Assembly (NCBI GenBank): GCA_048772705.1
Contig: JBLWGC010000173.1
Span: 231,371-295,370 of the forward strand
Source: Leidyana gryllorum EB-2025a
Lineage: Eukaryota > Protista > Apicomplexa
Direction of reading: 5' to 3'
Length of the DNA: 64,000 nucleotides
Shown: positions 4,806 through 31,400 of the stretch, one piece after another
Layout: each line of letters opens with the position of its first letter
Numbering within the stretch: the first letter of the stretch is position 1
Program-made: the position numbers and the translations under genes
Notes under the pieces: model-generated
The model's input: only the letters and a program-made list of their open reading frames with translations
The model's database searches: none
Told to the model about the DNA's origin: nothing

Positions 4806-7800
4806 TCAGTGGTGCTCTCTTACCGTATATCTGGAGAGGCCCGAGGGCGATAACGCGCCACCGTCCGACTCGAGGTGTTCAGTGCTAACTTGAGGTGTTA
4901 ATAAACCCTCGGCTTCCAGCAGCTGCTTGACCTCCTGTAACATGTCTTCGTCCGACACCTGAGCCACCAGACTCTTGAGAGTGCCAGTGTCCGGGGCCCG
5001 TCCTTCGCTTGCGCTTTTCTTCATCGAAGTCCTCAGCCGCGATGCTTCTGCCCGAATGAGATCCGCTATCCGTCCCTGCTGCTTCCGTCGTTTCATCGAG
5101 GGTGACCAGATCAGTGTTGGCGTCTCTCGACCGCCTCCTGCCACGCTGCTCTCGGGCAGCTCTGAGGATGGAGGCGTTGCAGCCGTCAATTTCTTCAAGC
5201 TCGCTGACGAGGACGAGTTGCGCAGAATTGATTTGGGTGGGGGTTTTGTCAAATCAGAGGGTTCCCGTACTGCTGCTTTCTTTGCGAATTCCGCAACATT
5301 GTCCTGCAGATCCTGCTCGGTAAAGGAAACCGACGCAGGTCCCTTCTTCAGACTCGGCTTGGCAATTGGAACCTTTGTGGGTACCGGTCCTGGGCTGGGG
5401 GCATACTCGCCCCGCAATATCGCGTCGGCCTTTGGGGTTATGTCATCGGGCGTAGGTGTGGTCACCCCAAGACTACTGCTCTTCTCATGGGAGGTCGACT
5501 TGGCTGACTCAAAATCTTTGGGAGAAGGGGCCTGTGGACTGCTGAAGACATCTTGTGATGCCGATCTCTGAGCCTCAGTGCTCTTCCGTAAGACATCGAC
5601 TAACCGCGACCCTCCCGGCGACCGGGCCCCCAATAATGCTTTCGTCACACCGCCCGCTCTCTTTTGAAAGGCTTTGGACGCAGGGCTCGCTGCTGATGGA
5701 TTGGTGACTCCTGCGAGTCCCGTCACTGAACTGGATGGGCTACCGCCGCTGCTGGCATTATCTACCGTCTCCTCTGCTGGTTTCTTCCCCAAAAGCTGTT
5801 TCTTGGGTACCAAGAAGCTTCCCCCTGGACCGACATCTGACTGGATCGACGACGCCGAATCCAACTCCACCTTCTTCAGTGGAACCGGAAACTTCTTTGG
5901 CTGAGGAAGCTGTGGAAGGTCAACGAGATCATCGCCCACTTCCTCCCCCGGCAGCGACTCGCCTCGTATCGGAGGCATCGCTTGCATGTCTTGAATCGAA
6001 CCTCTCTTCTCTCCAATAGACTCAGGAGACTTGCTGGAGGGCGCCGGCTTCTTTGACAAAAAGGGTCCTTTCTGGAATCCCTTGGCCGGAGGTCTCTCGA
6101 CGTCCTCGCCTGCGCTCGAGGGCGGAGGCGTGGGAGCATCGGGAGTGGGAGCCGCAGGTGGAGAGCTTTTCTTTTTCGGAAGTACTGGTGCCTTCTTGGG
6201 TAGTATTGGAGCCTTCTTTGTCGCTGGCGTACTGTCTGTCACGCTGGAAGGAGGCGGAGTCGGTGGGGGAGACGCCGTTGTTGTCTCTGCTCTCGGTGGA
6301 GAGCCACCAGACGCCTTAGAAGTCGGGATTGAAGCTTTCTGGATTATCACCTCGGGGGCGTTCTCCATTGAGGGCGCCAGAGACGAGTCTGTGTTTGTGT
6401 TCGTATTCGGACCGCTTTCTAACGCCTGTACCTTCTTAGGCACAGGCGGCTTCTTCATCGGAGGGACCTTCTTCTCACTCACTGACTCCTTCACTTTCAT
6501 AGCTGGGGGTGATTGCTTCTTGATCTCTTCAGTGTCGTTCTTTGCTGCAGGAGGGGGACTGGATGCTTGGGGTGGGGAGGACTCTTGCTGCACTGCCTCT
6601 TCCGAGTCGCCGGCTTTCGCCGGAGGCCCTTTCTTTGGGGGCAGAGGTCCCTTCTTGGGCAGAATCGGCGCCTTCTTCCCGCCGCCTATTTCTTCGACCT
6701 TCGGACCAGTCTCCGCTATGGGTTCTACTTCGGACTTCTTCGGTGGCGGTGGCGGTTTCTTGAGGACAGACGGGGCCTCTTTGGGAGGAGAGTCAACGGC
6801 ACTCCCCTCGGCTGGGGACTCGGCTGCTTTCTTTGGTGGCGGTGGCGGTTTCTTGAGGACAGACGGGGCCTCTTTGGGAGATTCGCCGACGGCACTCCCC
6901 TCGGCTGGGGACTCGGCTGCTTTCTTCGGTGGCGGTGGAGGCGGTTTCTTGAGGACAGAGGGGGCCTCTTTGACAGATCCAGCCCTAACGTCATCACCCT
7001 GAGGCTCAGTCGATTTCTTCGGCGGTGGAGGCGGTTTCTTGAGGGCAGAGGGGGCCTCTTTGGGAGATTCGCCGACGCTCGTGTCATCCGGTGAGATTGG
7101 AGCCTTCTTGGCTGGGAGTGGCGGCTTCTTGAGTATCGCTGGACCCGTCTTGGCGGCTTCCGTCTCCTTTGTGGCCGGCGGACCGCTCTCGGCGGTTGCT
7201 TTGGATGAGAGAGGAGACGGCGGCTTCTTCATCACAGGAGGTGCTGGGCGGTCTCCGACATCACTCTCGTCGGCTGACAAGTCAGTTCCCTCAAATTCAA
7301 TTGATTTCCGCACACTCAGAGACGGAGCTTTCTTGGTGGTGGGGGGTCCCTCACCAGCCTTCTTGGCGGGCAGCGGTGGCTTCTTCATCCCAGGGACTTT
7401 CTTTGCTTCTCCTGCATCCTCTGCCTGAACACTGGCGGACTCAACTGGAGACGGTGATCCCTTTGGCTCTTCAGATTGCGCCTCTGTATCGGGCGCGACA
7501 CTCTTCTTGGGCGGCGGTGGCGGAGGCTTCTTCGAGACTGTCGGAGGTTCCACTTTGCTCACTTCACTCCCGGTGTCTGTCACTGTCGCTGTCGCTGTCT
7601 TCTTTGGAGGTGGCGGAGGGGCTTTCTTGGTGAGGGGTGGAGAGTCATCTGCTGCGAGTGGGTCACTGGCCTCTCCTCCTTGCTGTTTGCTGGTTGGTGG
7701 TGAGGGTGTCGGTTTCTTTGGCACAGCGGGTGTTGGCTCGGGTTGTGAGTCGGCAGCAGTTTCGGCCCCTTTCTTCAAAGGAGGTGGAGGCGGTTTCTTT

Positions 7801-10800
7801 AAACCCACACCGGTCTGTTCGACTCCAGTCTTCTTGGATGGGGGGGAAGGTTTCATCGGCATGTCGGGCTCTTTGTCGGATGACACATCGGATGCAGTCT
7901 CGGTGACGGTCATTTTGGCCAGAGGTCCTTTCTTGAGGGGAGGAGATGGCTTCTTAGGGGCGTCTCCTCCGTCATCAGCGACCTTTTTGCTCATCACAGT
8001 GGGTGTGACTTTCTTGGGTACTGCTTTTGGAGGCCGATCTGAGTCAGAGTCCACGTCGCTCGTTATCGCAGAGGAGGTCTGGCTGGGAGTGAGAGCCGCT
8101 TTGCCCATAGCCATCTTCCCTTTGGGAGGTGGCGGTGGTTTGGAAGGGAGTTCTTTGCTCCGTGGTGGTGGAGCTTCGATCTCTTCCTCCGGAGGTGGAC
8201 TCACAGAGACCATTGTGCCACTCTTGGAGCGGGCGGCCTCTCTGGTCATCTTGGTGGCAGTGGGCACTTTGGGTCCCAGGAGACGCGCCAATTCCGCCAC
8301 TCGATCAGCCATATTGTTGGAGGGTCCATCCTTCTGTGAAGGCATTGTCATCTTCGGTTTGGACACCCCCTGAGCTGCTGGCGAGGCTCCTGTTCTGATT
8401 TCGAGACTCTTGTGTGTCCCCGGGAGCGGCCGAGAAGGTGGCGATGTTTGTCCACCTGAGGAAAGAGAAATCGGTGATTGTAAAGGCGATTGGGGCAGTA
8501 ATGTGCGATAATTGGGCCCCAACTCCTCCTCTGTTGTCATTCTTAACGGAGACGGAGTGGGACAGAACATTCGAGATGCAAGCTGCTCAGTACCTGTCTT
8601 TGGTGGGGGTTTGGGACTTTCTTCCCTGCTGGATGAGGGCGTCAGATCTCGCCGGTGGAGATTCTTCACACTCGCGACTCCCGGAGGAAACCTCTCTCTG
8701 CTGCCACTCACAGTTCCAGCCGTGAAGGCTTGGACTGGAGTGCCGAGAGGGGCATCATACTCGACGTCCAGCGGATCGCGGGGCATAATGTCCCATGGTT
8801 TCCTCCGCTTGGGAGACTTTGGCGTAGACGGGTGACTGGCGGCTTCCTGCTCCGCCAACTGTTGTGCACGTACCTTCGACTTGAGCGGACCCATAGCCGA
8901 GGCTCCACTCGACTGACGCGATACAGTGGAAGACTTGGGGCCAACGCGATCATTGCCAGCCTCGCCAGCCCTCATCTTAGCTTTGCGCTGTCTGATCATA
9001 TTGAGGAGCTGAGGGCTGTCGAAGTCTTTCGCGTCGTCGACGAGGGCATCGACTAAGGCAATGACCCGTCCACTCGCTTGGTGTGCATCTTGATCACGAT
9101 CGCGGCTCTCGGCACCCGGACGTCCCTTCTCAGCCTTAGACTTCATCAGGACCAGCAGATCTTCGACGCTGTCTTTTGTCAACCCGAGTTCCAACAGCTC
9201 GTCTTTGATGATAGCATAATGCTCTTGCCGCTTGCCGCGTGGGCCATACAATAAGAAATCTGCCCAACTCTCTCCATTTCCAGGATACCCTCTGTCTCGT
9301 CTGGCGACCAATTTGTTCCACTGCTCATCGCGTTTGTGCGTAGAGATCTCGGCAGTCGACTGCCGCCGTGTCTCCTTCTCTTCACGAGCCTTCTTCAACG
9401 TCTCCGCCATATCAGCCGACATTAGAGGATACATCTCGAATGGTACCTTCCCACCAGACGCTGACGACACCGGATCGATCGAATACTCGCCTTCCATTGT
9501 GTACACTTTGCTCTTCTTGGACGACGAACCGCTGTCTCGCTTGTCCTTCGAGGACGATCCGCTGTCTCGTTTGTCTTTAGATCGACTGATCGCCGTCTTG
9601 GCGCGCTCTCTATCACGTCGACTCGGAGTCGGCGACCTGTGTCTCTCCTTCTCCTTCTCCTTCTCTTTGCCGCGACGGGTGGGAGTCGGCGACTTGTCCT
9701 TCTCATGTCGCTTCGACTTGGAATGAGACGCCACCTTCGACTCCACCGTGGGCGAACGGCTCCCACCACGAGGCGACGGAGACCGAGACGACGATCGCAC
9801 CTTCTTGGGAGAGGCCATCTCACTGCCGCTGCGCGATTGCCGTTCCGAAGATCGGGATCCCTTTCCCTGTTTCCGTACTCGGATATCGTCATATTTGTCC
9901 CGTTTCGAATCGTATGTAATTCTTTCCGGCATCGAACGCATCGCACGCGTCGGGGGCACAGGAGACGAAAGCAGAACCGGTTGGGCTGTCGCGCGACGGC
10001 CTGTCGCCCGACTCCCCGGACCCAAAGGACTGCGAGTGCCTTCACGACTCCGTGAGGGTGAGAGCGACGCCCGAGACTTGGTGCTCTCCTGCACTGTTGG
10101 GGGACTCATTGTCGGGCTTTGACCCTCTTTGCTTCGGGAACGTTTCTTCACCTCTCCGGGAGCACTCCCGCCTCTCCGAAGGCGTACATCGGTGTCATCA
10201 GCATCCTCACGGCGGCCCGCCATCTCCTCCTCATGACCTCGAAGAACGGTGGGATAAGTGCCCAGCCGGTCCACAGCCGCCGGAGTAGCAGACTTGCCTT
10301 GAGATCGCGTCCACGCATCTCGGATCCGTTTCAACGTCTCAGTTCCCTCCTTACTTTTCTTAAAACTCTCACTCGGTTTGGGAGGGGATGGCTGGACCTG
10401 ACTAGGAGAAAGAGACTTCTCTCGTTGTGGAGGCGGCTGCGCTTCCCGACTTGGGCCTCGAGAGACCCTTGCTGGCGAGGAGGTCTTCTGAGGGGAGGGA
10501 GTTTTGGCTGGGCTGGAAGCGTTCTCGCGTCCTGCGGTGACTGTAGAGGGCGACCCCTGTGTCGATTTGCTCTGGGGTCCGGCGGGGGACGTTGATCGTG
10601 ATCGACCCAGTTGGGCGGGTTTTGACGGGGATCCCTTGGAAGGAGGAGGAGAAGGCGCCGTGGGGCGCTCGGGACTCTCCTGAGGGGCAACTGGTGCTGC
10701 TGGTTCTGGTGGAGGCTGCTGCTCTGAAGGTGGCTGAGTTTGTGGCTGTTGAGGAACTGGAATTTGCTGCGTTGAGGTGTCCACTGGGGCCTCAGCTTTG

Positions 10801-11534
10801 CTGTGCATTTGGTTAGGAGGAGAGGAGGGTTGTGCCGCATTCGGGGGAGGAGCCGGAGGCAAAGAGATTGGAGGCTGCATTTGGGCAAGATGGGAAGGGC
10901 CGGCTACTGTTGGTGGCTGGGGGGGAAGTGGGTTGTGCTGAGCTAAGAGATCATGGGGGTCACTGCCTGCGCCAATGCCATAGACCTCATCAGCATACGA
11001 TACGTGGGATCCTCTGGCATTAGGGCGTGTTGAATGTACAAAAGGAGCAGCGAAGACTTCGTCAGTGTGACCGTCCTGCACTTGACGCATGGCTGGGTGC
11101 ACAGAGGCAGGGACAGGGCCAGATATACCGAACCCGAAGCTGTATCGAGACATAGGCGGCGGTGGCTCGCGATCCCCGACGAGATGTTTGCCCAGACGGG
11201 AGTGGTGACGTGGAGGGAGCAGTCGATCGCGTTCGGCTTCTTCCCAATCTTGCTTTTTATGTTCTCCTGGGATCATTGGATGGCCTTCCATTGGGGACTG
11301 GAAGCTCTCTTTCTGCCATATTCGTTTCCGTGGGCCTGGTTGGCGCACCCTGACGACAGCTTGCAAAGGGCCTATGGCTTCATATTGGCACCGGAACGAA
11401 CGACGCTCCCTCATGGGAGCCGGATGGCCAAATAACAGGCCTAACCGCCTGGTGAGGTTTGAAGGGGGGATCCGTGGCCGGATGAAGTGCCTAGGACGGG
11501 GAGATTTGGTGCGTTTTTCCCATACTGCTGTCAT
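4806..11534 (-). CDS. Very large intronless Pro/Ser/Lys-rich low-complexity protein of unknown function
   Basis: One uninterrupted ORF of about 6.7 kb. The first in-frame ATG is at 11534 (the track start at 11561 is GTG). It has an RS-like block, many KKPPPPPKK motifs and no recognisable globular domain. Confidence 0.85.
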   Translation of the reverse strand: MTAVWEKRTKSPRPRHFIRPRIPPSNLTRRLGLLFGHPAPMRERRSFRCQYEAIGPLQAVVRVRQPGPRKRIWQKESFQSPMEGHPMIPGEHKKQDWEEAERDRLLPPRHHSRLGKHLVGDREPPPPMSRYSFGFGISGPVPASVHPAMRQVQDGHTDEVFAAPFVHSTRPNARGSHVSYADEVYGIGAGSDPHDLLAQHNPLPPQPPTVAGPSHLAQMQPPISLPPAPPPNAAQPSSPPNQMHSKAEAPVDTSTQQIPVPQQPQTQPPSEQQPPPEPAAPVAPQESPERPTAPSPPPSKGSPSKPAQLGRSRSTSPAGPQSKSTQGSPSTVTAGRENASSPAKTPSPQKTSSPARVSRGPSREAQPPPQREKSLSPSQVQPSPPKPSESFKKSKEGTETLKRIRDAWTRSQGKSATPAAVDRLGTYPTVLRGHEEEMAGRREDADDTDVRLRRGGSAPGEVKKRSRSKEGQSPTMSPPTVQESTKSRASLSPSRSREGTRSPLGPGSRATGRRATAQPVLLSSPVPPTRAMRSMPERITYDSKRDKYDDIRVRKQGKGSRSSERQSRSGSEMASPKKVRSSSRSPSPRGGSRSPTVESKVASHSKSKRHEKDKSPTPTRRGKEKEKEKERHRSPTPSRRDRERAKTAISRSKDKRDSGSSSKDKRDSGSSSKKSKVYTMEGEYSIDPVSSASGGKVPFEMYPLMSADMAETLKKAREEKETRRQSTAEISTHKRDEQWNKLVARRDRGYPGNGESWADFLLYGPRGKRQEHYAIIKDELLELGLTKDSVEDLLVLMKSKAEKGRPGAESRDRDQDAHQASGRVIALVDALVDDAKDFDSPQLLNMIRQRKAKMRAGEAGNDRVGPKSSTVSRQSSGASAMGPLKSKVRAQQLAEQEAASHPSTPKSPKRRKPWDIMPRDPLDVEYDAPLGTPVQAFTAGTVSGSRERFPPGVASVKNLHRRDLTPSSSREESPKPPPKTGTEQLASRMFCPTPSPLRMTTEEELGPNYRTLLPQSPLQSPISLSSGGQTSPPSRPLPGTHKSLEIRTGASPAAQGVSKPKMTMPSQKDGPSNNMADRVAELARLLGPKVPTATKMTREAARSKSGTMVSVSPPPEEEIEAPPPRSKELPSKPPPPPKGKMAMGKAALTPSQTSSAITSDVDSDSDRPPKAVPKKVTPTVMSKKVADDGGDAPKKPSPPLKKGPLAKMTVTETASDVSSDKEPDMPMKPSPPSKKTGVEQTGVGLKKPPPPPLKKGAETAADSQPEPTPAVPKKPTPSPPTSKQQGGEASDPLAADDSPPLTKKAPPPPPKKTATATVTDTGSEVSKVEPPTVSKKPPPPPPKKSVAPDTEAQSEEPKGSPSPVESASVQAEDAGEAKKVPGMKKPPLPAKKAGEGPPTTKKAPSLSVRKSIEFEGTDLSADESDVGDRPAPPVMKKPPSPLSSKATAESGPPATKETEAAKTGPAILKKPPLPAKKAPISPDDTSVGESPKEAPSALKKPPPPPKKSTEPQGDDVRAGSVKEAPSVLKKPPPPPPKKAAESPAEGSAVGESPKEAPSVLKKPPPPPKKAAESPAEGSAVDSPPKEAPSVLKKPPPPPKKSEVEPIAETGPKVEEIGGGKKAPILPKKGPLPPKKGPPAKAGDSEEAVQQESSPPQASSPPPAAKNDTEEIKKQSPPAMKVKESVSEKKVPPMKKPPVPKKVQALESGPNTNTNTDSSLAPSMENAPEVIIQKASIPTSKASGGSPPRAETTTASPPPTPPPSSVTDSTPATKKAPILPKKAPVLPKKKSSPPAAPTPDAPTPPPSSAGEDVERPPAKGFQKGPFLSKKPAPSSKSPESIGEKRGSIQDMQAMPPIRGESLPGEEVGDDLVDLPQLPQPKKFPVPLKKVELDSASSIQSDVGPGGSFLVPKKQLLGKKPAEETVDNASSGGSPSSSVTGLAGVTNPSAASPASKAFQKRAGGVTKALLGARSPGGSRLVDVLRKSTEAQRSASQDVFSSPQAPSPKDFESAKSTSHEKSSSLGVTTPTPDDITPKADAILRGEYAPSPGPVPTKVPIAKPSLKKGPASVSFTEQDLQDNVAEFAKKAAVREPSDLTKPPPKSILRNSSSSASLKKLTAATPPSSELPESSVAGGGRETPTLIWSPSMKRRKQQGRIADLIRAEASRLRTSMKKSASEGRAPDTGTLKSLVAQVSDEDMLQEVKQLLEAEGLLTPQVSTEHLESDGGALSPSGLSRYTVREHH
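6735..7080 (-). repeat. Coding tandem repeat, about 4 units of 90-96 bp (…SPKEAPSVLKKPPPPPKK…)
   Basis: The anchor tgagg(a/g)caga(c/g)ggggcctcttt recurs at about 6761, 6854, 6950 and 7040. Confidence 0.9.
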
Positions 11535-11571
11535 GTTCACTCGGCATGCAGGACGATGCACGGCACGTAAT

Positions 11572-12810
11572 CTAGGCCAGACCAGCTCGTCTCATCGCCT
11601 GTAGCATACATTCGCCAATCTCAGCTGGACTACGAGCCACCACAGCACCTGCGGCCTCCATGGCCTTAATCTTGCCAGCTGCAGTGCCCCGGTTGCCCGA
11701 CACAATAGCGCCAGCGTGACCTGAGAGGGTGTACCACGAATTTAGACCTGAAACCCTCACCCATACGGCGGCCCGGAGGAGCAGAACTGCCAGCAATGAA
11801 GGAAACCACGGGTTTCTTGCCTCGGTTGTATTCTGCGCATCGGGATATCAGGGAGGTAATGTGATGGAGTAGACATACCCTTCAACCACTCGGCAGCTTC
11901 TTCTTCTCCTTCGCCGCCGATCTCGCCAATGAGAATGATGCCTAAAGTCGTTCGGATTAATGGGCTTCGGCAGTATGAGCGAGCGCACCTTTAGTTTCAT
12001 CATCTTCCATGAAGTTCTTGAGCACGTCAATGAAAGTTGTACCATTGAAGGGGTCACCGCCGATTCCCACAACAGTGCTTTGTCCCAGACCTCGCTGTGT
12101 ACAATCAGTTATTTGAGTTAGTTGGACGCTTATGGAGCGCCTTACGGATGAAGTTTGAGCGACCGCCTCGTAAGTTAGAGTACCAGAGCGACTGACAATG
12201 CCAATAGGGCCCTGTTTGTGGATATGTCCGGGCATGATACCGATCTTGCATTCGTCCGGCTTGATGACACCAGGACAGTTGGGACCAATTAAGGTGGTCT
12301 TTGACTGTTGACTGAGAATCCGCTTAACTCGGACCATATCCAATGCGGGAATGCCCTCTGTGATACACACAACGAGAGGCAGTTCAGCTTCCACACACTC
12401 AAGGATTGATTTGCTAGCAAAAGGGGGTGGAACAAAGATCATTGAGGCTTCGCAACCAGTTTCGCGCATAGCCTGGCAACACTTGCATTTGTTCGCCGCG
12501 CCCACTCTTACCTCCTGTACATTCTTGAAAACCGGCAAGGAGTCTTTTCCATTCGGTGATCTCCACAGGGAACCAGCTTTGGCAGGGTTGACTCCGCCCA
12601 CCATTTTGGTGCCGTAACTCAAGCAACCGTCAGTGTGGTAGGAGCCCTAACAGCGACCATTACGGAAAGGGCCCCGAACGGACTTACATGTTTGCCCGTG
12701 ATTCCTTGACAAATGACTTTAGTATTCTTGTCTACATACACCTTCATTTCACGTTGAGCCACAGCGGCCTTGAAAGGAGTTGAAAGGGCATTGCTGTACC
12801 GAGAGAGCAT
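11572..12810 (-). CDS. SUCLG1: Succinyl-CoA ligase alpha subunit, mitochondrial (multi-exon)
   Basis: Motifs [44 protein letters not shown] and GIGGDPFNG. The phospho-His motif PPGRRM|GHAGA is restored across an intron. The N-terminal extension looks like a transit peptide. Confidence 0.97.
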
Positions 12811-13914: not shown

Positions 13915-16148
13915 ATGTTGCACCTGGGAGATGCCTTCGGATTCTCGGATCTTCGAAATGAAGGGGATAGTCCGGCTATCGACTTGCGCTGCCCTTACCC
14001 CACCCTTGTAGACCTTCGTCACCCCTCACTCCAATTCCGACCTGTTGACATAGCTGCCACTGTTCGTGCAACCGCTGTGAGTTTGTGTGTGTCCGTCTCA
14101 TATCAGATCCGTTTGCTTCAGAATGAGATCTATCAGGTCTTCGAGCGTCATCTTCGCAATCCCTCTACACTATCTGTTGTACAAAAGTGTATTGCAGTGG
14201 TCATGCCAGATCGATGTGATATGATCTTCACCATGTTGGCTATCGCAGGACTGAGTGATATCGCTTGTCCTCTGGACGTGCATCTCAGTGCATATGAATA
14301 CAAGTATCTGATGTCTCATATGCGTTGTACTCTGCTTATCGTCGGTTCTGAGGGATCAGTGGGAGCCGAACGTGCGGCAAAACAGCTCGGCATCCCATGT
14401 GCGCGCTTCAGATGGCACCATCCGGCGGCTATGGGAGGCGAACCAAAACTGCCGCAGCCCACATTGTCCATTGACGGAGCCCACTCCGACGGCCCAGCAC
14501 CCAATCATCCAGATTTAGTCATTAGTCCTAAGGAGTTTGAGGTTTGCTGCAAGTACTACACAGCGGGATACACTGGGAAGCCAAAATTAGTCGCACTGAC
14601 GCACCGCAATGTGGTTCTTTCTCTCGCCAACATGCAGAAGACGTATGCTTGGAGTAGCTACACGGGCGAGAACTGTGACATTGACGATCTGGACGCCGGA
14701 TTGTCCATCACCCCGTTATCACTGATGCACGGGTTGATTGCTGGCTGCTTGAGTCCATTGGCCGCGCAAACCCGGGTGATCATTCCTGCAGACGGCTTCC
14801 GGCCGGATAAAGTGTGGGATGAAGTTGTTGCCAACAACATCACTTGGCTCAGCATGACTCCGACAATGCTGAAAACCCTTTTAGATGCACCCCCCACCGA
14901 GAATTCGGCCGCGCCCTCTCCTGGGCAGTCCCCCGTGACCATTAGTGTCGCAGGAGAGTCCGAATCGCAAGCCGGAGGCACCGAAGACGCTAAGAGTACA
15001 GATGCGAAATCTATCTTTATCACCCCTCACACAGTCCTCCCCAAACACCGGCTCAAGTTTATCCGTGTCACGTCACAACCGTTGGACTCCAGCACAATTG
15101 ACTTGGCAGCAACAGTATTCAACACTGTCATCCTTCAAGCCTACTGTCTCACCGAGGCGGCACATCAGGTCTGCTCCAACGGCTATCCCACTCTCCTCAC
15201 TCGGAAAGCCGATTCGGTGGGCAAGCCCACAGGTACTGAGGTCTGTGTTTTGGACGCCAATCATAATGTATGCCCAATTGATGTGGCTGGAGAAATATGG
15301 ATCCGAGGTTACAATGTCATTGAGCAGTATGAGGATCTGAGGCCCGGAGATGACACCAAAGAATTCATATCCCACAATCACATCAACTGGAAAGCGTGCG
15401 GAGACAAACAGCCCTCATATTGTTCAGCGGCCTTCGACCTTGCCTTGGGGGTCCACAGATCTTTTAGCAGCAGTTTGACAAATATCAACCCAGCCACCAT
15501 CCCCCAGGCGGGACGGATGTCGCGACATCGGATATCTGTGGATGATCTCCCCCCGGAACTCCGACCCCCGGCCGATAAGGCACCTCGCACTCGCTCTTCC
15601 AACACCACGCGGGGACTATTGCGATTCGCCAGCGCGTTAGAACCGTATGTCGATAGCGACTTCCCTCACAGGACTGAGCCCCTAATCTCCCCCCTTCCTC
15701 TCCAAATCGAGTGGTTCCGAACTGGCGACACGGGACGGATGGATAGTGAAGGATATCTGTTCGTCATAGGGAGAAACACTGAGGTGATCAACAGGTGAGA
15801 TCTGTGATGTTGAAAGAACAATCCGAAACTTAATGTCTCAGAGGTGGAGCCAAAGTTTCACCCCACGAAATAGAGCAGGTGTTCAATGACTTCCCAGAGA
15901 TCAAAGAATGCGCAGCATTCGGTGTCCAAGACAAGAGAATGGGCGAGGAAATTCATTTAGCCGTCGTCCTGGAGGAGGGGAAAGAGTTGAACAGCGAGAT
16001 CACGCGTTTGTGGTGTGAGCGATCACGGGACCGTCTTGCCTTCTACAAGGTTCCCACGGACATTCATGCCGTGAAAGCTTTACCACGAGACACTGCCGGA
16101 AGAATACATCGAGAAACGCTGCAACATCAAGTGCTCCCGCATTTTTGA
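13915..16148 (+). CDS. AMP-dependent acyl-CoA synthetase, oxalate-CoA ligase (AAE3/Pcs60)-like, with divergent motifs
   Basis: Motifs YTAGYTGKPKLVALTHRN, AYCLTEAAHQ, SVGKP, GEIWIRG, WFRTGD and INR|GGAKVSPHEIE (across an intron at about 15794-15842), then LAFYKVP. Confidence 0.85.
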
Positions 16149-16976
16149 GCCCGATTCTCATCATTGGGTGTCCAATCCCACAATCTTCTCAAAGGCAGTT
16201 TCTCATCATCAGTCCTCGTGAGAAGCGGTTCAACAGCTGCATAGACCTTTCGCTCAATCTCTGCAATACTTCCGCTGGCATCAATCACAACCCATCGAGC
16301 CACATCGCCAGTTGCTTCACGGAGCTCATGTTGAAGCGCTTCAAACGTGTCTTGGACTTTGTTTTGAATCTCTGCCTTTTCGTATACCTCTGCGAACCCA
16401 TCACCATTTTATCAACCGTTGAGCACAAACGTTACCTCCTCCACCCTCTGTAGTTTCAGAACGGTGCAGCATCTGTTGGGGATCACCCTTTAGCTGAATG
16501 ATAATGTCCGGCGCTGTCAGCCCGTCATCCGGCTTCGCACACCAGTCTTTGTCGAAACCCTGGACCACCTCTGTGTTGACTTATCAGGAGGCAAGCCGGG
16601 CTCACCAGTGCAGCACGCGAATAAACAACACCACTTATCGCGAATCGATCGCACACCACGTGTGTTCCGCTGAGCAGCAGATTCCGGATTCGTTCATTCC
16701 ATTCCCAGCGGTTGGCAGAGAAGAGCAGATGGGCGGCATGAGTATCACAACCCCCTTCTTGCTTCAAATATGCATCCAATTGACGTCCGATGACAGTAGT
16801 TCGGTCTACAGATTCGTGCCGAATCACACCACACACATGTTCAATTTACCAGGAAATCTAATATGTTTGACTAGATTTTGCTGATCCTCAAGCTTTGCAG
16901 CTAAGATTTTGCTTTGAGTGGTCTTGCCACATCGGTCAATACCCTCAAAAAGGATGAATAGCCCTCTCTTGGTCAT
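16127..16976 (-). CDS. DTYMK: Thymidylate (dTMP) kinase, eukaryotic type, multi-exon
   Basis: Manual translation from ATG 16976 gives MTKRGLFILFEGIDRCGKTTQ. Also HLLFSANRWE, VVCDRFAISGVVYS, WCAKPDDGLTAPD and VYEKAEIQ. The last exon ends …LRRLWDWTPNDENRAQKCGST* (TGA 16129-16127). Confidence 0.95.
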
Positions 16977-17011: not shown

Positions 17012-18586
17012 ATGGAAGGCCGGTTGGTGGAAGAGGGATTGACATTCGATGATGTGCTCATGGTTCCGGCCTACTCGGAAGTGCTTCCGAGCGACGCGGA
17101 CTTGAGCACTCATTTGACAGCCCAAATCCACCTGAAAGCCCCAATCCTGTCTGCGGCCATGGATACCGTCACTGAACACGCGATGGCAATCGCTATCGCC
17201 AAAGAAGGAGGTCTCGGTTTCATTCACAAGAACATGAGCATTGCAGAGCAAGCCGCAGAAGTACGGAAAGTGAAGAGGTACGAGGCTGGAGTCGTTTCGG
17301 ACCCCGTTCGCATTCCTCCGACTATGATGCTTGGTGACATTAGGAAGCTAGCAGAGCACCACGGGTTCTCGAGCTTCCCTGTGGTCGACCCCTCTACCCG
17401 CAAGGTGTTGGGAATCGTCACAGGCCGAGACATTAAGTACGAAAGCAATGATACTTTACGGGCTGAAGACATCATGACTGGCGGCGACCGTTTGGTCACA
17501 GTGAAACGTTCTTCAACTCGTCCGTCTACTGCGGCGGCTTTGACCAGCGGGCGTCGCGAGTCTGCTCCCGAAGTAACGCACAATGATTCCCCCATGTCGC
17601 CCACCATCGCCCTGAGCCGTGGCGAGGTGAAGGCCATCATGGCACGCAATCGCGTGGAGAAGATTGTAGTGGTGGATGAAGAGAACCGATTGGAGGGTTT
17701 GATTACCCACCAAGATTTCATTAAGGCTGAGAGTGAGCCCAATGCTTGTCGCGACGCAGAAGGTTGCCTCCGCGTGGGTGCCGCCGTAGGCTGTGGCCCG
17801 GACACGTTGGAGCGTGTTTCTGCTTTGGTGGAGGCGCGAGTGGATGTGATTGTTGTGGACAGCTCGCATGGGCATTCCCAGGGCGTTTTGAATACCGTCC
17901 GGAAAGTGCGTCAAGCATTCCCAGATCTGCCGATCATTGGAGGCAACGTGTGCACAGCCGAAGGAGCTCGTGCTTTGGTGGAAGCTGGTGCTGACGGCGT
18001 GAAGGTCGGGATCGGCCCGGGCTCAATTTGCACAACTCGCGTGGTGACGGGTTGCGGTTATCCGCAGCTGAGCGCGATAGTTAATGCCCGAACGGGTGTT
18101 GAAGGGCAATTCGGAAGACGTATCCCTATAATAGCGGATGGAGGTCTACGGTACAGTGGTGACATTGCAAAGGCTTTGGCAGCCGGTGCGGACTGCGTGA
18201 TGATGGGGTCCATGCTGGCCGGGACTGAGGAAGCTCCTGGCGTTACTGAGCTCTTTGAAGGCCGGGCTTACAAGAGCTACCGTGGTATGGGTTCGGCGGC
18301 TGCAATGGCCAAAGGATCTGCGGACCGGTACTTCCAGAGTGGCAAGAAGAAGTTCGTCCCAGAAGGAGTTGAGGGGCGTGTAGCGTACAAGGGTCTGGTA
18401 AAAGAGACCGTCAGTATGCAGTTGGGAGGAGTTCGGGCTTGTATGGGTCTGACTGGTTGCAGGACGATCGAAGACTTGCATGAAAAAGTCAAGTTCGTGA
18501 AAGTAAGCACTAATGGTGTGCTGGAGTCGCACCCTCACAACATTATTATGACCAAGGAGCCCCCTAATTACAGTCGCCGCACTTGA
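17012..18586 (+). CDS. guaB: IMP dehydrogenase, bacterial (gammaproteobacterial-like), intronless, with CBS pair
   Basis: Motifs [32 protein letters not shown], catalytic [39 protein letters not shown] and ESHPHN. The first ATG is at 17012. Confidence 0.98.
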
Positions 18587-18625
18587 GCCGTTTTTGGTTG
18601 ATAGAAAATTTATTATATCTAAACA

Positions 18626-20251
18626 ATGGCGCAGTTGGTAGTGGTGGATTTTGGTAGCCAGTTCACTCAACTGATTGCAAGGCGTGTGCGTGAAAGTGGC
18701 GTCTATTGCGAAATCTTGCCGCACACCATCACTGCTGACGAGATCAAACAGAAGTATAACCCGAAAGGAGTGATATTGTCCGGAAGTCCAGAGAGCACAC
18801 TAGATGTCAATAGTGCGCGAGCAGATCAGGCCATCTTCCAGATGGGGCTACCGGTGATGGGTCTTTGCTACGGTATGCAGCTCATGGCCCATCAGCTGGA
18901 GGGTACTGGTGCCGTCCAGGCCTGTGGCCACAAAGAATTCGGTCAAGCTGAGGTCTTTGTGGATCTGAAGAGGGCTCCGATATTCCAGCGGGTAGAACAC
19001 GGAGATGGGGAGGCACGTGACTTGCCCCTCTTCCAGAACTTCCACAACTTTGAGAAAGTTGATATGCTGCAATTGCTCATGAGCCATGGTGACCAGGTGG
19101 TCCAGGTCCCCGACGGGTTCCAGGTCATCGCCTCGACACTCAATTGCCGAATTGCCGGCATGGCAGACAACCAGCGCCACTTCTATGGCCTCCAATTCCA
19201 CCCTGAAACGGAAGAATCAGTACAAGGCAGAGCAATACTCGCAGCCTTTGCACTCGATATCTGCAAATGTCAAGTAGACTGGACTATGGAAGAAGTCAAA
19301 CTCAGATTACTCAAGTCGATCAAAGATACCGTAGATCAGGAAGCTAACGGAGGGGACGTCCTTCTGGCTTTGTCTGGTGGGGTCGACTCTTCCGTTGTCG
19401 CCTGCCTCCTCCACGAGGCTCTCGGCCCTCGAGTCCATTGTGTTATGGTGGACAATGGTCTCCTCCGTCTCGACGAAGGAGCGCGAGTACTCGCTGCCTT
19501 CATGAAGCATCACCCCACCTTCAAGTTGGATCTCGTCGACGCCTCTGTTTTGTTTTACGAGCGACTCGAGGGTGTCACTGACCCCGAAACCAAACGCAAG
19601 ATCATTGGCAATCTGTTCATTGAGGTCTTCGATGCGGAAGTCAAAAAGAAATACCCCAATGTCACCATGCTAGCTCAAGGAACCATCTACCCCGATGTCA
19701 TCGAAAGCGCCAGAGCTGGCACAGCTTCCGCACTCATCAAAACGCATCACAACGTTGGAGGACTCCCAGAAAAGATGAATCTTAAGCTACTCGAACCCAT
19801 CCGCTACCTGTTCAAGGACGAAGTCCGAAAAGTCGGAGAACTCATGGGACTCCCCCACGAGTTTGTCTGGAGACATCCCTTCCCCGGCCCCGGACTGGGT
19901 GTCCGCATAATCGGAGAAATCAACAAACAACGTGCTGATAAACTCCGTCTCGCAGACGACATATTCATCCAGGAGCTTCGCAAGCATGATCACTACTACG
20001 AGTGCTCCCAAGCCTTCGCTGTCTTGCTCCCATGCAAATCTGTCGCTGTCAAAGGCGATGCCCGCACCTACGAAGAGGTCCTGGTCATCAGAGCCATCAC
20101 CACTGTCGACTTCATGACAGCGCGCGTCTCCGACTTATCCCCAACCTTCCTCAGACATGTTTCTCAGCGAATCACAAACGAAGTTCACGGCATCTCCCGC
20201 GTCTGTTTCGACTATACCGATAAGCCTCCGGGAACCATCGAGTGGGAGTAG
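18626..20251 (+). CDS. guaA: GMP synthase (glutamine-hydrolysing), bacterial type, intronless
   Basis: Motifs DFGSQFTQLIARRVRE, GLCYGMQ, MSHGD, QFHPE, SGGVDS, QGTIYPDVIES, IKTHHNVGGLP, RHPFPGPGLG and KPPGTIEWE*. Confidence 0.98.
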   Translation: MAQLVVVDFGSQFTQLIARRVRESGVYCEILPHTITADEIKQKYNPKGVILSGSPESTLDVNSARADQAIFQMGLPVMGLCYGMQLMAHQLEGTGAVQACGHKEFGQAEVFVDLKRAPIFQRVEHGDGEARDLPLFQNFHNFEKVDMLQLLMSHGDQVVQVPDGFQVIASTLNCRIAGMADNQRHFYGLQFHPETEESVQGRAILAAFALDICKCQVDWTMEEVKLRLLKSIKDTVDQEANGGDVLLALSGGVDSSVVACLLHEALGPRVHCVMVDNGLLRLDEGARVLAAFMKHHPTFKLDLVDASVLFYERLEGVTDPETKRKIIGNLFIEVFDAEVKKKYPNVTMLAQGTIYPDVIESARAGTASALIKTHHNVGGLPEKMNLKLLEPIRYLFKDEVRKVGELMGLPHEFVWRHPFPGPGLGVRIIGEINKQRADKLRLADDIFIQELRKHDHYYECSQAFAVLLPCKSVAVKGDARTYEEVLVIRAITTVDFMTARVSDLSPTFLRHVSQRITNEVHGISRVCFDYTDKPPGTIEWE

Positions 20252-20958
20252 ATCAGCTTTTGGCCGTAGAAACAGTCTTGTATGTTGCTAGGAAGTATCA
20301 ACTCTTCCACCTCCAACGACCGATCCAAATACACTGTTGAATCCTCACATGTGGTCATCCGAGGATCATTAGCCACCAGAACCATTCTAGCGTTGTCTTT
20401 GACGGCTCGGTAAAGCGCAACCGTTATTTTACGTGGAGTATGTACCGCCACCACGTACTTTGCACACACGTGTGGGACTGTTGAGTGTAGATACGAAAGG
20501 TCAACGTGATCATCATCCCTTGCTGCATCCGACACGAACTGTGGCTTGATGATCTTGATGGGCTGCGGGTAGACACGCTGTAGGGCAGCAGAGTCTAGGT
20601 CTGAGAAATGTGGCTCCACCACACACAGGGTCGTGTGGGTGAACAGCTTGCCCACTGCGACTGTATAGGCAGTCTGCACAATGCTCTCACGGTGGTAAGA
20701 TGGAGATCCCACACCAACCAGAAAGAGATCAATGGGGACGGAGTCATCAAACAGGCGTTTGACAACCGAGCAATGGGCATCCCACTGCTCATGACCCAGA
20801 ATAAGGTTGATTTGAGTTGTCAGGGCTCCCACGAGTGAGTCAATGCCCGTGTGTAGAGGGGGAAATTGACTGGGAGAGGAGGTGGGTTGCTTGGTATGGG
20901 TGTTGCGGCCCCGTCGCCTGTTTACAAGCGTCCATTCCTCGTCACCATCTGAGCCCAT
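20212..20958 (-). CDS. SRR1/BER1-like domain protein
   Basis: Ordered motifs LVGVGS…QTAY, EPHFSDLD, VAVHTP…LY and LVAND resemble the SRR1 family pattern (GLG…QLA, DPxFS, xPHC, IGNS). Starts with an EEWTLVxRRR N-terminus. Confidence 0.7.
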   Translation of the reverse strand: MGSDGDEEWTLVNRRRGRNTHTKQPTSSPSQFPPLHTGIDSLVGALTTQINLILGHEQWDAHCSVVKRLFDDSVPIDLFLVGVGSPSYHRESIVQTAYTVAVGKLFTHTTLCVVEPHFSDLDSAALQRVYPQPIKIIKPQFVSDAARDDDHVDLSYLHSTVPHVCAKYVVAVHTPRKITVALYRAVKDNARMVLVANDPRMTTCEDSTVYLDRSLEVEELILPSNIQDCFYGQKLIYSHSMVPGGLSV

Positions 20959-25406: not shown

Positions 25407-28400
25407 ATGGAGAGTTGGCTGTCCATCTATGAGTTGCCGTGTGATCGGCAGCCAAGGTATCTCTGGCAGCCGCAGATAACCCCAGACTACCCTAGTTACC
25501 TAGACGAGAACATGGAGAGTGAGGATGGTTCCTCGCCTCCTGTAGATCGCACGCGCCAGAAGACTCTGTTGTTCGACGTGCGGGATGCAGCCGGCATGAA
25601 GCGCTTCGTCGCCGTGTCAGTGGGTCAATCCCCAGTGACTGAGAAAGTACCTCAACCTAATGATGGTCCTGTGTTGCCACCAATGTACACCGTGTGGATC
25701 AAGATAAGCACTGACTTTGCAGCCGGCACCAAGGATTTGGTTTATCTGCACTGGGGAACTTCAGAACAGCACAGTGGCGAAGACGATGACGACGAGTGGC
25801 ACCTCCCAATGGGCCTCCCTGAGCTCCCCGCGGACTCCACCTTATGGAATAACGCAGCTGTCAGGACGCCATTGAGGCCCATCCCGCCACAAAACACCGC
25901 TCGAACCGTCACCATACGCCTCGGCCAAGCAGCTCAATGCCCATCTGCCCTTCATTTCGTCTTGTACTCTCCATCGGACAAGTTTTGGGGAAAACCAGGT
26001 TGCGGAGGGAACTTCTCGGTGCGCATCAAAGCCATCGTCGCTGAGCTTCAATTGGCTTCAATCCGCGAGAAACTTCTGACTGGCCTCAACTCCGCCCCCA
26101 ATGCTCATGACGTCGCCCTCTCATGTCAGAACGTACCTGACATCCACCATATCTTTGAAATACCTTCGCGAACTGCGGATCTCGATGTCGCAATATGGAC
26201 CTCTGACGAGGCGGTTGTCATTGAAATAATCACCAGTCTCCGTGAAGATGTTGTCCTGCACTGGGGATTTCTATCAGCCAGAGACGTCAATGCGACTCAA
26301 ACAGGTTGTCAAGGGGTCTGGGAAGCTCCAGATCCTCGTTTACGCCCACCTGACAACCTCGAATGCCCTGATACACCCGGTGCAGTAGACTCGCTATTCC
26401 ATCGTGGCATCCTCGCGCCCGATTGTTCCCTCATACAGTCTGTACGACTGGTCTTCCCATATGATGTGATCGTAGAACCATGCATACAACAAGCGTTGAA
26501 TGGGTGCTCATCTCATCATGCAGATGAATGGTCCTGGGCCGAAACTCAGGTGGGAGCCCAATCTTAAACTCTGACGACAATCTGCCCTCCCAGACCAATC
26601 CCCCAGACGCACCCCAATGGTACCTACCGGTTCTCTGTGACTCTAAGATTGACGACTTTGCTGGTGGCGCCTTTTCGCAAAGGCTCGCTTTTGTTCTCCG
26701 CACCCGTGACCCGGTAACTACCCTTCCGTACAATGCGCCGAACCAGTCACCACTGACTATCCTATCATCATCCCATATGTCAGCTAGACACGCACCGCTA
26801 ACCCACTTTCCGCTGGAAGCTGATCAGAAACGCTGCTCTTCTGGCCGCAGAATTTGGAATGGATTCGAAATGAATGTCAGCCCGAAGGCGACACTTGTCG
26901 TGTTGAACTCTGCCCTCTTAGCCCAGGTCCGACTGCGGGTGTCGACAATGTAAGCTACGGATCACTGACTGACAAATCCTATCGCCTCCACTATCCCTCA
27001 CAGGTGGATCGCCAACCTCAAGCATTGGGTAAAGTGATTCGTCACTGCCGCAGTCCGCAACGAGATGGGGGAACCGACTATGAGATTTCCATCCCATTTA
27101 GTGAAGCGTTCAAAGCCCGTTTATTCAGCGCATTGCAACGAGCTTCTGAGGAGAATGACTTGGTAACCTACGCTTCCTTGTGCCTCCACTACAGCCCCGT
27201 GGCTCTTCTCTGGTGGTGCTGCTTTGCTTCATGTTACGCCTGGCCGACCGGCTGCGCGCTGTAGGCTGCTCTGTATTCTCATTATCGGTCTGCCGGACGG
27301 ATTGCGTGTGTGCTCTACTTGGTGTGTCTCCGCCCCCACACAGCACCTGACCAGCGTAAACGAGATACCTTTTGTCGTCTGGCCCGCAGATCGAGCGGAT
27401 TCAACACGCAAGTTATTCGCTGGAGTACTTGCCCACGAACGAGCGACAAAGGCCTCCGCCCACTGTTGTACGGCCCACACTTTCTGTTTCCACGGGATCT
27501 GCCCGGGCAAAGCGCCAATCTCCTGAGCCCGACATCGCTCGGTCACAAATTGGAGCCCCTCCGTTGAATTCATCCAGTATCATTGTCTTACTCACACCAC
27601 CCCCCGTTCCCGGTACCGTCGTCTTCTTTAGTACATTTGCTCTGGATGATCCGGGAGGGCCCGGTGTTGTTCACGTCCTCGCCGTTGAAGAAACAAGCCC
27701 CATGGAGGCAACAAGCAAGAGTGGACACCACCGGAACAAGACTTTACAAGTCATGATCAAAATTCATATACTGGTCAGCATCAATGTCCCGTGTGTCGTG
27801 CATTGGGGGCTCCTTTGCGATCGAAAAGGATCTCAATGGATTAGACCTGATCCTTCTCTGTGGTGAGTGACGCGCTGTCCGGATAGAGCGTCACTGACTC
27901 TGTGTATTCAGGCCCGAGGGGACCGAACCGTTCGATATGCATTCGGTGGATTCCCCGATGAAGATCGACCCCCGGACTCGAATGTGTCGATTGGAACTGC
28001 GTTTGCCACAAAAGGTGTTGGTACTGCAGAATGGAGGTGATCGGGCGAATGCGCCGGGTCAAGGATTGACAGCATCTGGGGTGGTGTTTGTATTGAGGGA
28101 TATCATGACGGACCGGTGGATCAAACAAGCGTCAGGAAATGATCTTTTCGTTCGTATTAGGAAGTGAGTATGGCTCTTCTTGGACTCAACGGTTACATTG
28201 TTGTTCGCAGGGAGAAGTATCCCGACTTCCTAGCCCGGCAGTGGAAGGGCGCTCATACCAGCCTGGTGGTCCGTTTGCTCCAAAGCGAGCTGCGAGTGGA
28301 CCCATTGTGGCCCATTGCCGCGAACCAAAGTTATATATCACTCAGCCAGTTGGTTACAGCTGTCAACTACGACAGATTGGATATCGATTACTGGGCCTGG

Positions 28401-31400
28401 GTTTTCGTGTGGTGGCGTTTCTCGCACTTACGGATCTTTGATTGGCACAGACATGCCCACTCTCGTCCTTGGGAGGTGGCCGATATCTCCAGGCAAATTG
28501 GTGAAGCAATCGTCTCTCACTGGCGCAGTACTTCAAGGAGTCGACCAATCATCCGTCTCCTCCTACAACATGTTTTATGTATCCGCGAGGATCATGATGT
28601 GCGGAAAGATTTGCATAGTATATTGTCAAAGTGAGTCTCGGGTCCGCTAAGATGGAGTGTACAATCTTTGCTCTTCCACGCAGATCTCATCTCATGGGAC
28701 TTCCATTTTTCGAGCAATGGTATCGCAAGTTGCATAATGCGGTTGGAATAGAGGACTTTGTTATATGCCGAGGCGTTATAGCCATGCTGGTGAACCTGAG
28801 AGCGTCTTCGTTCTGGGAATGCCTAAGTTTTTACGGATCGGACTTTGTTGCACGAGACTTGGGATTCTCGGCATCCCCTGTGGTCCCACCGGCCTTCTCG
28901 TTTCTCCAAAGCCAATTGTGCCACATTGCACAACTCAAGCTACAGGAGGACCTGACACCCAGTGCGCTCCACAAGGCGAATCCTGGTCATCCCTCAACGA
29001 GTTTCATAGCCCGTCATATCGATCAACAGACTGCTCGGTTGAGAACACTGGTCGATGCTCTCGAGTCATTCAGCACCACCCTTCAATCCCTATTCTTCGG
29101 GGTTCACATTGACACCGCTGAACTATATGCGAGAGAGTCCCTCCCAGAGGAACTTCGATCGCTCATCGCTCAACTCAGAGAAATACAACTCGATCTACGA
29201 CCACCATGCCCAAGCTTACTCTCTGTTCCTCGAATTGATGGAGCCGTCCAATCTGAGAACAAAATAGATCACTATAATAAAATGTTTGAACTTGCAAGCC
29301 GAGCACGAGATCTATGCTCGCCTATAATATCACAATGTACAGACAATCGTATCGTTCGGGACTTCATGGTCGTTGATATTGCACTGGACAATCTTCAACA
29401 AAAGTGCCTCGCTCACGTCTTCGGCTTCACGGGACCACCTCTGAGCACCTACTTGAAACCAAGTACTTCACCTGATCCAGCCAATGTCGAATGCTCATAC
29501 TGTCACAGCGAACATATTCCTTATTCCCATCCACAAGCGCTCCTGCTTCCCTGGATGACAGTGTGTGGCGCTCCAGCTCGCTGGGTCCCGGCCATTCCTT
29601 GTAGATATTACCGATATGGTTGTATTGTGCGACTGGCATATGTCTGTGCCAATCTACTCACCGGTCTCAAAATGCTACATCCCAGTGTTGATGAAGCCAA
29701 CGCACTCATCAACGACTGGCGAGTTCTGGTCGCTCAAGCGGCACACAGTCTCTCAGCTCCAGTACGAGGTGCTTCCACCACTCACTTTGTTGATTACGAA
29801 CAAGTTGTAAGGGATAAGTTGCAGCTTCGTCTTCATTGCATCCATCACCACGCAGGTACTCATCGAAGCCCTAGCCAAAGACGAAGACGGCTCAAAGTTC
29901 ATGCACTTCATCGCCAGCTTTGTAAGCCGAGTAGAAAGGTGAGCTGCATCCGACGTGGAGACGTGAACAATATATGAATCATGATACTCCTGTTCTATCT
30001 TGTGCTGCATGACCTCTGAATGACTCAATGGGTATGAGGAGACACGCGTCTCCGCACACACGTGTTTTCAAGTATCACACCCAAGGAGTCATTCTGTGAA
30101 AAGAGGAATTCTGGACGTGATGAGCCATTCGGCTTTTCTATGTGCCCTCAACAATGATATGGCTTGTCCTTCTCGATCGATATCATCACTGTAATTTGCA
30201 GGTGCGCCAGCCGCATTATCGATCTCTGCCTGGTGTATTTCTCCGATAAAGTCAAGTTTCTGTTCACCTGCTTGAGCGATCTAGATGTCTACACACAAAG
30301 CTGCAGTGGCGAGAAGCTAGAGAGCGCCTCTTCCCCTCCTGCCCCTCCGCGCGCCTTCACCGGCGACGACCCTCTCCTCTCTGTGATGGGAGGAGGGGTG
30401 AATCCTATTAGTCCTGCGCAATCGGTACCCCATCATCTGTTTCACGGCAACCTGATAGCCACCAGTACGGGCGAAGCTGCAAGCAACTCTGGATTAGTTG
30501 GTATGCTGGGACGAGTCTCGTCCAATGGATACCTGAGTGCGGCAGCGAACCAAGAAGATTATTCCAGTGGTTCTGGACGATCGGAGCGGCTTTTACGTGA
30601 CGTGCACAGTTTTGTCATTGGAGTGGTCAAACACAGCGCTCTGTTTTGGATCGTCCTGACACTGTCACGCATCCAACCGCTGCTCCGATGTTTTACATTC
30701 GTCCCACCCTGGCGCCTTCTTAGTTCGGTGCACTACGCTGTCGGTTCTTTGGTTGTCGTGGACACCTTCAATGACCTCCTGCAAGCCGCCGCAAGTGGAG
30801 GGCTATTTGCGGGAGCTTTAGACGGTCCAAATCCACCTCAGATAACGTCGTTCGCGCGTCCTGTGATCTTGGTGGTTCGGCATGTGATTGGATGGGAGCG
30901 TCTCCCTTTCAACACTGCAGCCCTGGTAATGGGCCCAACAGTAGTCCCCAGAGGAGCGGATAACGACAGTGAAGCACTATTCTCAGCGCCTCACCTACTC
31001 TCACCCCTCTCAATTCAGGCGCGCCAAATGTCCATTTTATGTGCAGTTGCAATGGATCCCAACGATTTCGAGAATCTCATAAGCTCAATTCGAAGCCAAG
31101 AGATGCAGATCGGGGAATCAACCGAGGTGTTTATTCCCGAGCACCAATGCGAAGTGAACATTCGATCAATCAAAGTGGATGTTGCAACAGCCAGTGGTAC
31201 CTCCACGGGGAACAACACCTCCTCTACCGACAAGCCCCCGTCCACTAATCCATTTGATGACACACTGACTCGTCCTACTTCGTGTGCAACAACATCAAGT
31301 CCAATAGGGAATGTTGTTTCGGTTGATAGCTCGACTACGGCGGGAGCAGGGGGGGGTGGCTCGCCGACTAATGCGTGTAAAGGAGAGAGCGATGCTGTGT

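Follow-up and report, generated by a model that had tools for sequence, protein, structure and literature searches.

The gregarine Leidyana gryllorum, a parasite of invertebrates and a relative of the malaria parasite, carries, within the stretch of 64,000 nucleotides analysed here (the window), the genes for IMPDH and GMP synthase (GMPS) as a guaB-guaA pair of bacterial order, which the assembled contigs place in a eukaryotic chromosome. The transfer is old and predates several gregarine lineages. In the best reading of the data, to which we assign a probability of roughly 80%, both genes would have arrived together, by a single co-transfer of a bacterial guaB-guaA segment.

The gene pair and its products

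IMPDH and GMPS are encoded by two uninterrupted ORFs (Table 1), and both the ORFs and the spacer measurement bear out the initial annotation, which had described two intronless genes lying head-to-tail, 39 bp apart. The same annotation had ascribed introns to most genes of the window; among the neighbours, to which our check extended, the dTMP kinase and succinyl-CoA ligase alpha genes have introns. Intron-free host ORFs of 2251 and 1286 aa are also present, and because of these long ORFs the intronless state alone is weak evidence. An exon-by-exon profile search of the genome (15.5 Mb, 237 contigs) returned one match each for PF00478 and PF00958, both at this locus; copies of IMPDH or GMPS elsewhere, a check initially suggested, were thus not found (a heavily split copy being unlikely, if not strictly excluded). 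GC and GC3 of the pair are host-like. Measured against a noisy host reference, codon usage is host-like for GMPS (0.77 versus the host, 0.27 versus E. coli) and uninformative for IMPDH (r of 0.31 and 0.38, respectively).

Table 1. Features at and around the guaB-guaA pair (positions in the window).
Feature	Positions	Strand	Remarks
Succinyl-CoA ligase alpha subunit (host)	11572..12810	-	intron-split, 5' end approximate; in block conserved in L003
AMP-binding acyl-CoA ligase (host)	13915..16148	+	in block conserved in L003
dTMP kinase (host)	16127..16976	-	three GT-AG introns; head-to-head with IMPDH
Divergent spacer between dTMP kinase and IMPDH start codons	16977..17011	.	35 bp; candidate shared promoter region
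IMPDH, guaB type	17012..18586	+	524 aa, no introns, two CBS domains; ATG 17012, stop 18586
Insertion between IMPDH CBS repeats	17510..17608	+	about 33 aa
Spacer IMPDH-GMPS	18587..18625	+	39 bp, AT-rich, without Shine-Dalgarno motif
GMPS, guaA type	18626..20251	+	541 aa, no introns
SRR1-domain ORF (host)	20212..20958	-	PF07985, E 9e-5, just under cut-off

IMPDH scores 579.8 bits on TIGR01302 (cut-off 481.5) and stays under the cut-offs of the GuaB1 and GMP reductase models. The residues checked by alignment (catalytic Cys, flap Arg-Tyr, cofactor-site Asp and bacterial Glu) are all in place, C340, R439, Y440, D283, D376 and E451 being equivalent to C305, R401, Y402, D248, D338 and E415 of the E. 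coli enzyme. The two inhibitor-motif sites hold Ser285 and Leu480, the same residues as in E. coli and Vibrio, instead of the Ala/Tyr motif of the Cryptosporidium type. At the site of the insertion between the CBS repeats, three other gregarines have 18-20 additional aa, which are absent from three aligned bacteria. GMPS scores 677.4 bits on NF000848 (cut-off 400) and has the single-chain GuaA architecture, composed of a GATase triad (Cys81-His192-Glu194), a PP-loop ATPPase and a C-terminal domain, with S250-S255 and K397 also present; triad and PP-loop are intact in the alignment to E. coli GuaA. Both proteins had initially been taken as bacterial from a few quoted motifs. These are indeed found in both translations, but they are weak evidence for the origin of GMPS, because fungal, diatom and apicomplexan GMPS have the same architecture.

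Genomic context and conservation in other gregarines

The pair is flanked by eukaryotic genes on both sides. The dTMP kinase gene upstream contains introns of 44, 46 and 46 nt, whose removal gives an open frame of 238 aa, and downstream the 3' end of the SRR1-domain ORF is antisense to the last 40 bp of GMPS (20212-20251). A convergent overlap of 3' ends is also seen between the AMP-ligase and dTMP kinase genes (about 22 bp, 16127-16148). The window encodes, in addition, DNA polymerase delta, glucan water dikinase, Tho2, BCCIP and CAF1 domains; the pieces of the alpha-glucan water dikinase lie at 25407-31750 and fit amylopectin storage. The minus-strand ORF of 2251 codons (4806-11561) has no Pfam match and a strong AT skew, and its likely start is at 11534, with a counterpart in L003 (see below).

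The top named matches of both proteins come from Gregarina sp. Pseudo9, Blabericola migrator, Protomagalhaensia sp. and Gregarina sp. Poly1 (53-62% identity), followed by Gammaproteobacteria (53-58%), and orthologues of the pair occur in four gregarine transcriptomes. In an assembly from another sample (L003, run ERR10900127), the large ORF, the succinyl-CoA ligase alpha subunit, the AMP-ligase, dTMP kinase, IMPDH and the start of GMPS are found in identical order and orientation, with spacers of 45 bp between dTMP kinase and IMPDH (9741-9785) and of 258 bp between IMPDH and GMPS; its IMPDH is 61% identical to that of the window at the protein level. Synteny in relatives, initially proposed as a check, is thus conserved over six genes and, together with the eukaryotic flanks and the gregarine best matches, upholds the original judgement that contamination is unlikely. 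Another contig (L004, 42% GC) codes for a gregarine-type GMPS with 138 bp upstream, too short to reveal linkage to IMPDH, so that the linkage has been observed in two genomes only, those of the window and L003; GMPS is intronless in all three genomic copies. In L004 (139-4429) an OPT oligopeptide transporter follows GMPS, a downstream neighbour different from that in the window. The Blabericola migrator IMPDH (P0241), derived from a 14,457-nt multi-ORF transcriptome contig, ends at 431 aa without the C-terminal part, for which a frameshift, a retained intron or DNA carry-over are candidate causes. P0003 turned out to be an ordinary bacterial contig, and scans of genome and metagenome contigs returned bacterial loci only.

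Phylogenetic origin of the two enzymes

The donor group of IMPDH is firmly identified as Enterobacterales in the broad sense. In a tree of 40 taxa (LG+C20; C. parvum, Campylobacterota and eukaryote-type IMPDH were left out) the gregarine sequences form one clade (100/100) within this group (100/100), whose members include Succinivibrionaceae, Aeromonas, Photobacterium, Shewanella, Pasteurellaceae and enterobacteria, two alteromonad-side genomes falling just outside. A position outside Gamma/Betaproteobacteria is rejected (p=0.0003), 27 signature sites are common to Enterobacterales alone versus 4 to other Gammaproteobacteria, and the closest bacterial matches in BLAST-type comparisons are Photobacterium and Succinivibrionaceae. 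A PDB search gave 596 bits for the best chain, which we take to be from Vibrio, and 385 and about 317 bits for others, presumably C. parvum and eukaryote-type IMPDH, respectively. The C. parvum enzyme lacks CBS domains; since the gregarine IMPDH keeps them and has E. coli-type residues, it was probably acquired separately from that of Cryptosporidium.

The origin of GMPS is less sharply defined. In a FastTree placement, which was discarded, gregarine GMPS joined long branches; the careful trees were built without these rows (P0314, P0323, P0351, Treponema, gL138-140 and others) and without the partial L003 GMPS. They recover one gregarine clade (100/99) within Gamma/Betaproteobacteria (99/99); the sequences of Plasmodium vivax, Eimeria magna and an MMETSP eukaryote group apart from it, in a clade of their own. 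Identity is 54-58% to Gammaproteobacteria versus 45-48% to eukaryotes, and 31 sites are Gamma-like versus 5 eukaryote-like (13 versus 2 among derived sites, once those common to other bacteria are removed). At 1.0 changes per site the gregarine branch is a long one, and the sites bearing on a placement in Enterobacterales are only 4 versus 2. The sister of the gregarines in the best tree is a long-branched gammaproteobacterium (91/76) and not Enterobacterales, a genome that IMPDH rejects (p=8e-8), and the closest bacterial match is Methylophaga-like (BLAST-type comparison). With re-optimised trees, the AU test did not reject gregarine GMPS grouping with Enterobacterales (p=0.25), with eukaryotes (p=0.37) or with Plasmodium/Eimeria (p=0.11), nor its position as sister to all Gamma/Betaproteobacteria (p=0.45). 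Placement on a fixed backbone, which is a more liberal test than re-optimised trees, rejected positions beside Plasmodium plus Eimeria (p=0.004 and 0.0001), beside the eukaryote clade (p=0.033 and 0.034) and inside core Enterobacterales; positions beside Succinivibrio (p=0.22 and 0.39) and near the base of Gammaproteobacteria were allowed, and the branch leading to eukaryotes plus Aquificota was not rejected. On these sequence comparisons GMPS probably comes from Gammaproteobacteria and could share the donor of IMPDH.

Of the congruent nesting of both proteins in Gammaproteobacteria, put forward with the initial annotation as a check, the IMPDH half is firm, the gregarine sequences lying within Enterobacterales in the broad sense; GMPS can be assigned only to Gamma/Betaproteobacteria, with a different sister in the best tree. 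A gammaproteobacterial GMPS is the most likely reading, although the trees do not pin down its donor.

A proposed single transfer and its alternatives

The order guaB-guaA had been described as that of the operon in E. coli and many gammaproteobacteria, and this is confirmed by our sample, where 51 of 57 gammaproteobacterial genomes have guaB ahead of guaA on the same strand at no more than 3.6 kb (47 of them at no more than 300 bp), so that a guaB gene coming from this group would usually bring guaA with it. In one of the sampled gammaproteobacterial genomes (L141, G065:C2:6045-9362) guaB and guaA share a single frame of 1011 aa in which the IMPDH match ends early, either a fusion or an assembly error. 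We propose that a gammaproteobacterial donor, a relative of Enterobacterales in the broad sense, would have passed a guaB-guaA segment in a single event to a common ancestor of this and related gregarines, that the segment would have been inserted next to the host dTMP kinase gene in head-to-head orientation, and that the ancestral eukaryotic IMPDH and GMPS would have been lost. A single co-transfer is favoured by gene order more than by congruence between trees, and also by the GMPS tree. As for the original proposal that one transfer delivered the whole pathway module, integration, the gammaproteobacterial origin of IMPDH, the conserved order in a second lineage and the single copies all stand, whereas one donor for both genes goes beyond what the trees say.

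The differences between the two proteins in the sister group of the best trees and in top matches (Photobacterium/Succinivibrionaceae for IMPDH, Methylophaga-like for GMPS) speak for two separate bacterial transfers that were later joined, with IMPDH coming from Enterobacterales in the broad sense and GMPS from another gammaproteobacterium, or for co-transfer from a donor with a mosaic guaBA. We consider this unlikely, as GMPS does not reject a placement with Enterobacterales, its branch is long and its informative sites very few, and rejoining by chance in operon order and strand among thousands of genes would be improbable. Quite unlikely as well is that only IMPDH is foreign, GMPS being a fast-evolving inherited eukaryotic gene brought next to it by selection for clustering of nucleotide genes. 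Some clustering may occur, given that dTMP kinase adjoins the pair and that two further purine genes lie 16 kb apart elsewhere, and the eukaryote and Plasmodium/Eimeria groupings survive on re-optimised trees; however, the best tree puts GMPS in Gamma/Betaproteobacteria at 99/99, identities and site counts favour Gammaproteobacteria, the fixed backbone rejects positions beside the apicomplexans or the eukaryote clade (p at most 0.034), if not the branch of eukaryotes plus Aquificota, and none of the three genomic copies has introns. Bacterial contamination or a chimeric assembly is hardly credible in view of the junction with the same eukaryotic neighbours in the independent assembly L003 (the same artefact would be needed twice), the orthologues in four gregarine transcriptomes, the host-like GC and GC3, the best bacterial identity of only 58% and the gregarine-specific insertion in the protein.

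Expression of the pair

The pair had been labelled an intact operon, a description that we do not retain: the transfer is old, the proteins have gregarine-specific insertions, the spacer is of ordinary length and nothing points to polycistronic expression. No Shine-Dalgarno motif precedes either start, and bacterial promoters and terminators are not in excess (3 sigma-70 sites found versus 2.2 expected). Nearby host tandem spacers measure 37 and 36 bp, which, together with the 258 bp of L003, rules out the 39-bp spacer as an operon relic. Transcript contigs of relatives (2137 nt for IMPDH; 2096, 2264 and 1754 nt for GMPS) are too short for both genes, an indirect indication since they come from other species; in Blabericola, IMPDH and GMPS lie on different transcriptome contigs. 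A T-rich tract ending in CAG directly before the IMPDH ATG could be a splice acceptor, and the 5' UTRs or promoters of dTMP kinase and IMPDH must overlap, given the short distance between their starts in both the window and L003.

Expression is thus probably eukaryotic, gene by gene, with two ordinary mRNAs, that of IMPDH starting from a region shared with the dTMP kinase promoter and that of GMPS from a putative start in or just before the spacer. The conserved head-to-head position suggests the use of the dTMP kinase promoter region by IMPDH. It is doubtful that a captured bidirectional dTMP kinase promoter still drives, in part, a single transcript of the pair or overlapping ones, with the second gene translated by reinitiation; if it did, a retained bacterial operon would let a eukaryote co-regulate its supply of dTMP and GMP.

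Purine metabolism and implications

IMPDH is predicted to convert IMP to XMP in an NAD-dependent reaction and GMPS to convert XMP to GMP using glutamine and ATP, so the pair would act downstream of purine salvage to IMP in the parasite. A genome search did not find PurH, and matches to HGPRT-like, adenylosuccinate synthetase and deaminase genes are present, which fits purine salvage to IMP followed by GMP formation through the pair. Another contig holds the adenylosuccinate synthetase, in several pieces, and, 16 kb away, an adenosine/AMP deaminase match (G000:C213:251380-252888 and 268415-268798). Given the HGPRT-like gene, the gregarine may not strictly depend on the pair; in C. parvum, both IMPDH and GMPS can be deleted (PMC6800313).

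A literature search returned no report of guaBA in gregarines, an Ascogregarina survey of possible relevance being outside its coverage. Apicomplexans would here have exchanged their IMPDH for a bacterial one a second, independent time, now together with the next enzyme of the pathway. The operon order has survived between lineages whose proteins share only about 61% identity, in a phylum with little conservation of gene order (PMC3176833). Most of the operon transfers documented in eukaryotes brought in new pathways, and the replacement of core enzymes has been shown less often. The pair could serve as a shared marker for gregarine phylogeny and as a small test case for the passage from operon to eukaryotic expression in a genome with spacers of 35-40 bp. 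It also leads to the prediction that inhibitors designed around the Cryptosporidium IMPDH motif would be inactive on these gregarines.

Comparison with known systems

The gregarine proteins belong to the GuaB and GuaA families and are predicted to function as the bacterial guaBA module does. In E. coli and further gammaproteobacteria this operon has the same genes, order and strand, and its IMPDH has the CBS domains kept in the gregarine; Ser and Leu occupy the inhibitor-motif sites of the E. coli and V. cholerae enzymes too (PMC4342496). Unlike that operon, the gregarine pair is nuclear, has intron-bearing flanks and gregarine-specific insertions, and shows neither Shine-Dalgarno motifs nor an excess of sigma-70 sites.

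Cryptosporidium is similar in having a bacterial IMPDH, functionally paired with a GMPS, in a purine-salvaging apicomplexan. However, the C. parvum IMPDH is reported to have come from epsilon-proteobacteria (PMC545779), has the Ala/Tyr inhibitor motif (PMC4342496) and is encoded on a different chromosome from GMPS (cgd6_20 and cgd5_4520; PMC5146892), whereas the gregarine has an IMPDH donor in Enterobacterales in the broad sense, Ser/Leu and linked genes.

[quoted passage not shown] The yeasts gained a new secondary pathway, in contrast to the gregarine, in which two genes only seem to replace two core housekeeping enzymes.
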